Sequence record: ON287372.1
Reading direction: 5' to 3' (one strand)
DNA length: 64,000 nucleotides
Part shown: positions 54,784 through 60,747 of the stretch, one piece after another
Layout of the letters: each line of letters begins with the position of its first letter
Numbering within the stretch: the stretch's first letter is position 1
Program-made: the position numbers and the translations under genes
Notes under the pieces: generated by a model
The model's input: only the letters and a program-made list of their open reading frames with translations
The model's database searches: none
Told to the model about the DNA's origin: nothing

Positions 54784-56817
<2,034 letters not shown>

Positions 56818-57791: not shown

Positions 57792-58082
57792 TTAGTTAAG
57801 AGACAGAGTACCTTCCATCAGATCATGAGGGCGGTGCTTCTGCAGAGCCACTACGACTGAGCGCAGCGGTTGAGGGGAGATCTGGATGACTTGCATCAGA
57901 TCGCGAACAGGAAGGGTCAGTGCCCGGCTACGGATAGAAGAAGCACAATTCTTCAATGCCTGGTTGTTGGCAGGGTTGTTGTAGTTGCACAACTGCAACG
58001 TGATCAAAGCATCGGAGAGCTCTTCTTTTTCTACAGTGTTCATGTTCATCATTGCTTCCTCTATTTTAGTAGTGTCTGACAT
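57792..58082 (-). CDS. hypothetical protein
   Basis: 96-aa helical ORF. Confidence 0.6.
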   Translation of the reverse strand: MSDTTKIEEAMMNMNTVEKEELSDALITLQLCNYNNPANNQALKNCASSIRSRALTLPVRDLMQVIQISPQPLRSVVVALQKHRPHDLMEGTLSLN

Positions 58083-58577: not shown

Positions 58578-58594
58578 GTAATATAGACCTGAAA
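58578..58594 (-). promoter_or_regulatory. early promoter
   Basis: TTTCAGGTCTATATTAC, upstream of 58488. Confidence 0.72.
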
Positions 58595-58600
58595 TTATCT

Positions 58601-58792
58601 TCAGATCTTGCAGCCTTCGCAGTCGCCATCATCGACGAAGTCTTCACCGGATTCAGCGCGTTCATTATTGCGCTCAGCAACAGCATCGAAGTCAACGCCA
58701 TCGAAAAGGGAATCAAGCGGATCCCCTGCCTGATCTGGTTTGGTGGTTGATTCTGCATCGGGTTTGAAGTACTGGGATAAATCTTTAGACAT
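58601..58792 (-). CDS. 63-aa acidic protein ending in a ribonucleotide-reductase-like Cys tail
   Basis: C-terminus DDGDCEGCKI*. Confidence 0.65.
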   Translation of the reverse strand: MSKDLSQYFKPDAESTTKPDQAGDPLDSLFDGVDFDAVAERNNERAESGEDFVDDGDCEGCKI

Positions 58793-58803
58793 GCGGGAAA
58801 GCC

Positions 58804-58941
58804 TTAGTGCTGAGGGTTAGCCAAGATGGTCATTAAACCATCAACGATACCATAAGACTGTGAACAACTGGTCACGGTAACCAGGGATTCTTTGTCCGAT
58901 TCTACGATCTCAACTGCTTGCGCAGCGGTGTTCTGTTGCAT
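58804..58941 (-). CDS. 45-aa hypothetical microprotein
   Basis: Not in the track. MQQNTAAQAVEIVESDKESL..., RBS AAGGA. Confidence 0.5.
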   Translation of the reverse strand: MQQNTAAQAVEIVESDKESLVTVTSCSQSYGIVDGLMTILANPQH

Positions 58942-59111
58942 TGGATATTCCTTAAACGGAGTGTGGTAGTCTAGTTCTTACTAAACTATTTAGAGGCGAT
59001 TTAAAAATTTAAGGGAACAAAAAAAGAGGGACATCCCTCTGAGTTAATCCCTCCCCGGAGGGAGGGTTTTTTAACGCACTAACTTCCCAGAATCATACTA
59101 TCGAGGGGAAA

Positions 59112-59747
59112 TTATCGCCCCCGACCAGAAGAACGGAAGTTCCTGTTTTTATTGAAGAATTTCCCTGGTTTAACTTTATTGTGGATGGAGCGATTGTTCC
59201 CTGGGATGTTCATTCCCTTAGGCTTAAACATCTTTAGCTGAGGTAACTCAGACTCATCGCGTAAGAGTTCGATCTCTTCAGCTTCGAAGTATTTCTCAAT
59301 TACAGCCGGACAACTAATAGCCCGACCACCACCGAGTAAAATCTGCTCAACTTCAGTCGACTTTATCTCAATGAACTTGGCGAGGAACTCAATACCTCGA
59401 TCCAGTATAGCAACCTTCAATGACTCATTAACTGAGGTCACCTGACCATTGCCTATATCGACACCGCCGTACTCAATGACGTCACCGTTACGTTCAATGA
59501 TCATGAAGCGATAATTAGCGACGTCATGAAGATCTATTGAGCATTCACCCGAGAATTTACTCCGGGCAGTTTCTACTAAAGCCAACAAACGTTTAGCGGC
59601 ATCAACCGGCGTAACACGACCACGTACACGCAACACTACTTTATTAATGTCTACGTTCAATACGTCGTAAAGCGTAGCGCGATCTGTAGCAGGAGGCTGC
59701 TGATCAATAATCCCTTCCTCTACCCCAACGTTCTTTATTTCATGCAT
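59112..59747 (-). CDS. hypothetical protein, possible degenerate Ntn-hydrolase fold, basic tail
   Basis: 211 aa. FMIIERNGDV and AILDRGIEFL loosely match the neighbours. The C-terminus is Arg/Lys-rich. Confidence 0.55.
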   Translation of the reverse strand: MHEIKNVGVEEGIIDQQPPATDRATLYDVLNVDINKVVLRVRGRVTPVDAAKRLLALVETARSKFSGECSIDLHDVANYRFMIIERNGDVIEYGGVDIGNGQVTSVNESLKVAILDRGIEFLAKFIEIKSTEVEQILLGGGRAISCPAVIEKYFEAEEIELLRDESELPQLKMFKPKGMNIPGNNRSIHNKVKPGKFFNKNRNFRSSGRGR

Positions 59748-60223
59748 AAACCTCTTTCCTTCATTTGGGCAACGATCTCATCAATCGTTAAGGTTAAATA
59801 GCTACCAGTGAAAGACGGTACCGTTTTGTGATACCAAGACAATGCTTCTTCTGGAGTGTTTATTAAATGGAATGCTGCTGTGGCCAACTCCTCAGTTTTG
59901 AAGTCTGCTGACCGAACATGACGGAAACCCTTACCGGGAATGAGCCTGACTGAACATAGCTCGCCATCTGGCCCAAAGTTCAAGTCATAAAGCCTGCCAT
60001 TAGGTTTAACTAGCATGCAAGCATGAATAGCTGCGTCAGTACCTTCGAAACTTTCGTCATCTAACTTATCGATAGCATTGAAGCAGAATAATCCATAAGG
60101 CACAACAAAGCCATGACTCGTAAATAAAGAATCCCAGCTCAAAGTAGTGGCATGGTGATTGGCACGTTGAATCTTGGTACTGAAGATGAGTTTATCGTCG
60201 AATACACCAGCGAAGTTATTCAT
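59735..60223 (-). CDS. degenerate HslV/proteasome-beta-like protein
   Basis: 162 aa. The C-terminal LATAAF...TPEEAL...VPSFTGSYLTL aligns with the upstream gene. No N-terminal Thr/Ser. Confidence 0.55.
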   Translation of the reverse strand: MNNFAGVFDDKLIFSTKIQRANHHATTLSWDSLFTSHGFVVPYGLFCFNAIDKLDDESFEGTDAAIHACMLVKPNGRLYDLNFGPDGELCSVRLIPGKGFRHVRSADFKTEELATAAFHLINTPEEALSWYHKTVPSFTGSYLTLTIDEIVAQMKERGLCMK

Positions 60224-60747
60224 TTCTTTTTCCGCAGTCTGATTAAAGAAAGATCTTTAGTGGAGTAGGTTACTACCGTGCCGCCACAGTAAGGGTTCAT
60301 CTGTATAGCGTTACGAACCGATTCTTCCACCGTACAGCCATTCGTAAGAGACATCAGTGCAATTCTAGCCCCAGTGCCCATGGCAAATGGCGTGTCCGTT
60401 ATAATGCGTTCCAGGCCTTCTTTGGTGATGATGTACAAATGCCGTTTCGTCATGAAGCACAAATTACGACCGTCTTCTTCCCTTGTGTAGACCTTAAGAA
60501 TATCCCTAGGTAATTTAGCAACCATCTCACGGTTACTTTCCATGTCTTTAATAGCGGCACTGAAGTAAACATATTCTTGACTGGCATATTTGATACTGAC
60601 ATTATCGCCAATCATGCCCATGACCATGTAGTCATTATGACCGAATAGTTTCAGCATTCCGGCATTACGTTCAAAGTCAGTGTTCTGGGAAATGATACAA
60701 CGCGAGTCAGCGGAAATAACCCCATTATGATAAAGTAAGACAGACAT
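60220..60747 (-). CDS. HslV/proteasome-beta-like Ntn-hydrolase
   Basis: 175 aa: MSVLLYHNGVISADSR, K, AMGTGA, EESV..A...PYCGGTV. Confidence 0.72.
   Translation of the reverse strand: MSVLLYHNGVISADSRCIISQNTDFERNAGMLKLFGHNDYMVMGMIGDNVSIKYASQEYVYFSAAIKDMESNREMVAKLPRDILKVYTREEDGRNLCFMTKRHLYIITKEGLERIITDTPFAMGTGARIALMSLTNGCTVEESVRNAIQMNPYCGGTVVTYSTKDLSLIRLRKKK

Follow-up and report, generated by a model that had tools for sequence, protein, structure and literature searches.

A short gene of a Serratia jumbo phage raises the question of whether the redox-active C-terminal tail of a class I ribonucleotide reductase (RNR) can exist as a protein of its own and, if so, what such a free tail would do for the phage. 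The tails of class I RNRs are established as the route by which the active site is re-reduced (PMC9669993). The DNA analyzed here, called the window, is the first 64 kb of record ON287372.1, from Serratia phage vB_SmaS-Totoro, and window and record coordinates are identical. Totoro belongs to the genus Moabitevirus and has a genome of 278,767 bp. The initial annotation had likened a protein encoded in the window to the tail of the RNR large subunit, NrdA, and had offered as possible roles a reductant shuttle for a tail-less phage RNR, a shuttle for the host RNR, or a decoy for host thioredoxin or glutaredoxin.

The mini-protein and its gene

The mini-protein is encoded on the minus strand at positions 58601 to 58792, stop codon included, and is recorded as hypothetical protein TOTORO_00700. 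Its 63-residue translation, MSKDLSQYFKPDAESTTKPDQAGDPLDSLFDGVDFDAVAERNNERAESGEDFVDDGDCEGCKI, contains 18 acidic (D+E) versus 6 basic (K+R) residues and has a calculated pI of 4.05, which bears out the earlier description of an acidic open reading frame (ORF) ending in DDGDCEGCKI. The protein had also been described as probably disordered, and an AF2 monomer model built from a 33-row alignment fits a largely disordered chain: its confidence was low (mean pLDDT of 65), short helices were placed at residues 25 to 29 and 35 to 47, and the tail was modeled as coil. Sequence alignments delimit a conserved acidic and hydrophobic N-terminal motif, PLDSLFDGVDFDAVA (58676 to 58720, minus strand), for which the family consensus is [FL]D..x[IVF]D[FE]D[AE][VI]. 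The second of the two modeled helices, residues 35 to 47 (FDAVAERNNERAE; 58652 to 58690, minus strand), is predicted to be a charged helix and carries a conserved '..A[VI]..RN.ER' segment. The chain ends in the tail DDGDCEGCKI (58604 to 58633, minus strand), which by comparison is of the NrdA-type CX2C redox kind and reads C58-E-G-C61-K-I-stop.

Signals for translation and termination accompany the gene. A candidate ribosome-binding site, AAGG (58802 to 58805, minus strand), lies 9 nt 5' of the ATG and overlaps the stop codon of an upstream small ORF, TOTORO_00710 (58804 to 58941, minus strand). A terminator-like hairpin (58585 to 58608, minus strand) overlaps the stop codon of the mini-protein gene, and a second hairpin with a T-run (59025 to 59040, minus strand) ends the preceding unit, which contains the gene at 59112 to 59747; matching terminators are annotated for both in phage Moabite. 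TOTORO_00710 encodes 45 amino acids ending in ANPQH and had no match in Pfam, PHROG, or NCBIfam. Its Moabite counterpart, the 52-residue product of gene 320, likewise begins with MQQ and finishes with DGL.TI.ANPQH, and one Cys is conserved between the two. Because the same terminator-like pair brackets both genes and the TOTORO_00710 stop codon lies 11 nt before the ATG of TOTORO_00700, the two probably form one transcription unit; the Moabite annotation likewise has an identical two-gene unit between two terminators.

Other genes of the minus strand nearby include a homologue of HslV-family peptidases at 60220 to 60747 (PHROG 1040, E value of 5e-21), the Moabite counterpart of which is annotated as an ATP-dependent protease subunit. 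Downstream of the mini-protein gene are a gene for a DUF7740 protein (E value of 9e-13) at 57792 to 58082 and one for an NAD-dependent DNA ligase of 660 amino acids, named in the record, at 54784 to 56766.

Database profiles assigned almost nothing to TOTORO_00700. It had no Pfam domain at E values up to 0.1, PF13876 included, and no NCBIfam match. A weak match to PHROG 10239 (E value of 7.3e-4, 21 bits) aligned residues 33 to 63 with profile positions 15 to 47 of 47, and related jumbo-phage members matched this profile with E values of 1e-10 and 4e-9. PHROG 10239 is an unannotated family of unknown function, and its link to NrdA had not previously been noted.

Comparison of the tail with NrdA C termini

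We compared the mini-protein tail with the C termini of complete NrdA proteins. The E. coli NrdA C-terminal stretch used for comparison was ...DDLVPSIQDDGCESGACKI, and the acidic C terminus with a Cys pair that had been described for this enzyme was verified, its end being ...NTRDGAEDAQDDLVPSIQDDGCESGACKI. T4 NrdA ends in ...ADDCAACKL, likewise with CX2C spacing. A scan of IMG/VR DNA with the pattern D-C-E-G-C-K-I-stop found class Ia NrdA genes encoding 752 to 761 amino acids, all PF02867 positive and ending in ...NTRDGAGEEEAEDCEGCKI. These genes belong to T4-like phages of Cronobacter, Enterobacter, and Citrobacter and are annotated as RNR large subunits, and the last 7 residues of the Totoro tail are the same as the C terminus of NrdA from the T4-like Cronobacter and Enterobacter phages. 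When the family alignment was compared with 14 NrdA C termini using hhalign, the two matched with a probability of 87% (P value of 3.7e-6) over 15 columns, ending exactly at both C termini. Run over whole genomes, the family profile picked out the C terminus of NrdA in 7 genomes; all of these matches were in register, and they fell in open frames of 770 to 821 amino acids with per-genome E values from 6e-4 to 0.05; 7 of the 10 long-ORF matches of this profile were NrdA.

The tail also tends to follow the NrdA of the genome in which it is found. In three genomes of a second bacterial family (G105, G875, and G911), the chromosomally encoded mini-protein ends in ...DDCAGGACKI and the genome's own NrdA in ...DDGCAGGACKI. 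The coding DNA of the two tails shows synonymous differences, and their flanking sequences bear no relation to each other, which rules out a recent duplication of the nrdA 3' end in these genomes; since the differences are synonymous, the likeness looks like the product of selection rather than of a fresh copy. In Pantoea-type genomes, NrdA ends in CE[SG]GACKI and the mini-protein in CEGCKI, and the E after the first Cys is common to both. One genome (G177) is an exception to this covariation, its mini-protein ending in CGDSCTI, a CX3C arrangement found in this one member, versus CAGGACKI for its NrdA. The spacing of the Cys pair also sets an enteric or phage mini-protein (CX2C) apart from enteric host NrdA (CX4C), and in this respect the host tail is inexactly copied, although CX4C variants do occur within the family (P0027, P0041, L046, L061, and L062). 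The tail of class Ib NrdE, GCVSCAL, is unlike both the mini-protein and the NrdA tails.

What the mini-proteins share with the NrdA tail (E. coli residues 737 to 761 and the tails of T4 and T4-like phages) is therefore an extreme C-terminal position, an acidic flexible run, a Cys pair whose second member is preceded by G, and K-I (or K-L) as the last two residues. What sets them apart is that no RNR catalytic barrel (PF02867) is attached and that they have an N-terminal motif and a helix of their own. These comparisons show that the mini-protein tail is an authentic NrdA-type tail and that the likeness is beyond chance. The proposal of a stand-alone copy of the redox-active tail is thus strongly supported, by the invariant cysteines, the identity with T4-like phage NrdA, the covariation, and the GrxA-type glutaredoxin neighbor described below. 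Judged in the same way, TOTORO_00700 is a mimic or derivative of the NrdA tail and not an RNR, because it has 63 residues and no Pfam domain and comes from a phage genome that lacks PF02867, PF00268, and PF13597. The N-terminal motif was considered separately as a mimic of the NrdB C-terminal tail, to which its hydrophobic spacing is alike by eye. This candidate was rejected: hhalign found no similarity to six NrdB tails, with 1 column aligned and a P value of 0.06.

Distribution and conservation of the family

Homologues of TOTORO_00700 with 56% identity occur in Moabite, 2050HW, BUCT660, Kodama, and other phages. A tblastn search of 50,697 phage records for relatives found the protein in the genus Moabitevirus (89 amino acids), in Koutsourovirus of the Autographiviridae (phiKDA1 gp38 and KKP 3828), in Loessnervirus of the Chaseviridae (Y2, SSEM1, Fifi, and French Erwinia phages), and in Rivsvirus (pEa_SNUABM_5 gp034). 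The Loessnervirus copy is an ORF of 37 to 43 amino acids ahead of the spanin genes and is unannotated in the Y2 RefSeq record, NC_019504. An exhaustive profile search of 1.84 billion representatives yielded 34 clusters at 50% identity, with members of 35 to 98 amino acids, none of which was an RNR. A typical member has about 44 amino acids and consists of an acidic hydrophobic motif (e.g., MDLDKFF..vDFDaia), a charged helix (..KN.E[RK]...), and the tail (e.g., DDGDC[ED]GCKI). Genes of nucleotide metabolism, encoding thymidylate synthase or ThyX, dNMP kinase, and dCMP deaminase, are often near the mini-protein genes.

Some members carry additional sequence. Koutsourovirus members (L003:3905-4189, L005:2866-3144, L013 to L015, P0009, and P0010) have an extra N-terminal Cys cluster, MTGKCGADCTNRCSIGACP, with the arrangement CX3CX3CX4C-P, which resembles a set of metal or Fe-S ligands. 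The product of pEa_SNUABM_5 gp034 (L006:2506-3132) is an extremely acidic protein of 208 amino acids with the module at its end (...DIDEDAIEQKRNGGGEALDDGEADCEGCKI), and its gene lies two genes downstream of that for a predicted dCMP deaminase.

Members of the family are also encoded by bacterial chromosomes. Such copies are rare: 10 carriers were found among 401 genomes sampled from the order to which Pantoea belongs and 7 among 151 genomes from the second bacterial family, which lies within that order, and 400 further genomes sampled from the class yielded no other credible member, so that members were found only in the order of Pantoea. Their neighbors are unrelated housekeeping genes: yedI, yodC, and dgcQ in Pantoea, glpM and dcuB in Budvicia, and genes for an amidohydrolase, an esterase, or UvrD in the second bacterial family.

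The family is thus carried by at least five unrelated phage lineages in addition to bacterial chromosomes. Conservation of the terminal CxxC had been put forward as a check of the proposed likeness, and in an alignment of diverse members both Cys residues were invariant (33 of 33), while the final K-I and the G that precedes the second Cys were almost invariant. This conservation indicates that the mini-proteins are a genuine family under selection. A profile search of the family alignment against the PDB returned nothing at E values up to 10, the tail being too short for hmmsearch against full-length chains, and the ESM Atlas contained only unnamed small-protein clusters with scores of 0.85 or less. 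Our full-text literature search, the coverage of which leaves out most subscription journals and thus leaves room for prior work, found no account of a stand-alone RNR tail; as far as we could find, the mini-protein family is previously undescribed.

The same tail on other proteins

The tail is not confined to the mini-proteins. In N4-like Erwinia phages (S6 gp048, phiEaP8, Pastis, Tellus, and others; L120, L111, L151, L161, and L165), it is fused to PF13876 proteins of 114 to 126 amino acids. These proteins end in ...ANDLVASLGGDDCEGCKI, which parallels the E. coli NrdA stretch DDLVPSIQDDGCESGACKI over approximately 18 residues and includes an NrdA-like stretch upstream of the cysteines, the whole reading ANDLV[AS].L..DDCEGCKI. 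Among the tblastn matches listed, PF13876 homologues from Ralstonia and Vibrio phages had alignments that stopped near query residue 100, before reaching the tail. Two further small proteins, of 71 (L119) and 69 (L115) amino acids, also carry it. PF13876 is the family of the Acb4 anti-CBASS sponges (bioRxiv 10.1101/2024.12.30.630793), and fusions among counter-defence proteins are common (bioRxiv 10.1101/2025.07.12.664507). The likeness between TOTORO_00700 and the Acb4 family is limited to some Erwinia phage members and to their last 20 or so residues, and TOTORO_00700 itself lacks the PF13876 domain. This distribution shows that the NrdA-like tail behaves as a portable module and that the functional unit is the tail rather than the mini-protein as a whole, because the same tail is found on Acb4-family proteins and on other small scaffolds.

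The IMG/VR scan also found approximately 55 proviral loci (e.g., L087, L090, and L092), in records of mostly about 20 to 60 kb, in which a nonacidic frame ends in LVFTYLDCEGCKI or ...PPPLSFRALLVFTYLDCEGCKI. These were judged to be unrelated or out of frame; the motif is absent, and only the last 7 residues are common to them and the family.

RNR and redoxin genes of the carrier phages

We searched the phages that carry a free tail for RNR genes. The earlier statement that the window holds no RNR gene proved correct and extends to the whole 278,767-bp Totoro genome. PF02867, PF00268, and PF13597 were absent from Totoro, Moabite, Y2, phiKDA1, and pEa_SNUABM_5, and PF02867 was found neither in the Erwinia jumbo phage AH04 nor in any of another 23 viral records that carry a free tail, of which 15 are at least 98% complete; three NrdA-bearing records used as positive controls in the search of viral records were all detected. 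A look for a phage nrdA lacking its own Cys tail had been suggested, and there is no nrdA anywhere in the Totoro genome. The suggested role as a shuttle for a tail-less phage RNR is therefore refuted, no RNR large subunit having been found in the six named phages or the 23 further records. It follows that only the RNR of the host can be involved. The lack of an RNR in the carriers discriminates only weakly between explanations, because RNR-less phages are common and the base rate is high.

Totoro also has no glutaredoxin or thioredoxin gene, PF00462 and PF00085 both being absent. Conversely, AH04 and three diverged relatives have a glutaredoxin gene that is followed, after 4 nt, by the start of the mini-protein gene. 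The encoded glutaredoxin has 84 to 86 amino acids and an active site of CVFC, CAFC, or CPFC; it passes the cutoff of the NCBIfam GrxA equivalog (NF008401, 90.9 bits versus 84), and its closest solved relative is E. coli glutaredoxin 1 (Grx1; 1EGO and 1GRX). The textbook protein substrate of the Grx1 family is the NrdA tail. In PDB entry 1QFN, Grx1 is found together with a 25-residue chain that is NrdA 737 to 761, and the NrdA tail peptide alone is a Grx1 substrate. In two of the AH04-like jumbo phages, a Tad2-like gene (PF11195; L024:2889-3188 and L025:2545-2844) lies about 3 kb upstream of the glutaredoxin and mini-protein pair, which suggests that this may be a counter-defence neighborhood.

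Modeling of a complex with NrdA

A complex of the Totoro peptide with E. coli NrdA residues 1 to 737, from which NrdA's own tail had been removed, was modeled with the family alignment in three runs and with three controls. The ipSAE values were 0.52, 0.57, and 0.17 (median of 0.52), compared to 0.02 for the best control. Contact agreement between the runs was at least 78% and partner pLDDT at least 53, and no interface was returned. Of 80 solved complexes, 58 reached the pass mark for such models, as did 2 of 110 mismatches; a pass at 0.60 or under was given by only 7 of the 80 solved complexes but by both of the passing mismatches. The model thus lends weak support to a complex between the Totoro peptide and NrdA, and its score could reflect the model's memory of NrdA-peptide structures.

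Possible roles of the free tail

The explanation that we regard as best, and to which we would give about an even chance, is that TOTORO_00700 is a free NrdA redox tail, equipped with a helix and a DFD docking motif, that undergoes thiol exchange with the host NrdA and most likely delivers electrons in trans. Host Grx1 or thioredoxin would reduce the Cys58/Cys61 pair of the peptide exactly as it does that of the NrdA tail, and the reduced peptide would then enter thiol-disulfide exchange at the host NrdA, for which the acidic DFD-type N-terminal motif is a putative docking element. Most likely, electrons would be delivered in trans to the active-site disulfide of NrdA, and dNTP output would rise, to the benefit of a phage wholly reliant on the host RNR. 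We favor electron delivery in trans because class I tails are the route of active-site re-reduction, because the carrier phages depend on the host RNR, and because a phage-supplied glutaredoxin makes sense as the other half of the couple.

The free or fused tail might instead compete for whatever binds the NrdA tail, be it host Grx1 or thioredoxin, the docking site on NrdA, or another host factor, and so inhibit or blind it, possibly as a form of counter-defence. A high-copy acidic mini-protein is a typical form of mimic or decoy. The presence of the same tail, with its NrdA-like upstream stretch, on Acb4-family sponges of N4-like Erwinia phages hints that the role is one of counter-defence and not of metabolism, fusions being common among counter-defence proteins, and the Tad2-like gene about 3 kb from the glutaredoxin and mini-protein pair points the same way. 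Blocking the host RNR or its reductants, however, looks self-defeating for RNR-less phages that need the host enzyme, a phage-encoded GrxA-type partner is more in keeping with a functioning redox couple than with a trap, and the chromosomal copies in Pantoea, Budvicia, and the second bacterial family sit amid housekeeping genes. We know of no defence system that acts on the NrdA tail. On this evidence we hold such competition to be unlikely, yet a serious contender. A broader form of the idea, in which the tail of approximately 20 residues would be a transferable tag that phages of Enterobacterales place on DFD mini-proteins, Acb4-type sponges, and other small proteins as a counter-defence decoy against a host mechanism for the surveillance of, or attack on, the RNR tail or its redoxins, strikes us as improbable.

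Two explanations would deny the NrdA likeness any function. That TOTORO_00700 is a small metal-binding or structural CxxC protein, using Zn, Fe, or an intermolecular disulfide, with a convergent and functionally irrelevant likeness to NrdA, would agree with the frequency of CxxC as a metal ligand pair and with the additional N-terminal cluster of the Koutsourovirus members. The likeness nevertheless exceeds the cysteines, taking in the acidic run, the E or A after the first Cys, the G before the second, the terminal K-I, and an upstream DL[VI]; the tail covaries with the NrdA of its own genome; two Cys residues alone are insufficient for a metal site; and the tail is modeled as coil. We therefore see only a slim chance that this is the answer. 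The identity of the tail with that of T4-like phage NrdA, in carriers without an RNR, would also be expected of a decaying, functionless remnant of an nrdA 3' end left after the loss of phage RNR genes. Such a remnant is hard to reconcile with a gene that has its own start, ribosome-binding site, and terminator, a conserved N-terminal motif absent from NrdA, flanks free of nrdA-like sequence, and invariant cysteines kept across bacterial chromosomes and five or more unrelated phage lineages, and we give it hardly any credence.

Implications for RNR and its phages

Trans-acting delivery of electrons by TOTORO_00700 would have a conceptual precedent in GrcA (YfiD), a stand-alone "spare part" protein that duplicates the glycyl-radical domain at the C terminus of pyruvate formate-lyase and acts on that enzyme in trans. 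The likeness is one of concept only, namely, that a small, separate protein repeats the functional C-terminal portion of a large radical enzyme. GrcA folds into a domain and takes the place of a piece lost by cleavage, whereas the mini-protein is a disordered thiol tail, and the two are unrelated in sequence and structure. Sml1, Spd1, and Hug1 are small disordered regulators of yeast RNR that act on the large subunit, and competition between Sml1 and the CX2C tail of Rnr1 has been reported. These proteins differ from the mini-protein in being eukaryotic inhibitors that have no Cys-pair tail and no sequence similarity to it, and our literature search found no description of a bacterial or phage counterpart.

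Until now, the Cys tail of class I RNR has been regarded as belonging to the enzyme itself. If TOTORO_00700 does act as a free NrdA tail, the last electron-relay step of RNR can be supplied or intercepted by a separate protein of 40 to 60 residues, and old questions become testable: whether the tail can act in trans and whether re-reduction is limiting in vivo. The family would then provide the first small-protein modulator of a bacterial RNR and a functional analogue of the yeast Sml1-type regulators or of GrcA. In addition, the occurrence of the tail on Acb4-family proteins suggests that nucleotide supply and phage counter-defence are connected, and if the tail does serve as a counter-defence tag, the supply of dNTPs would be tied to anti-phage immunity in a new way.
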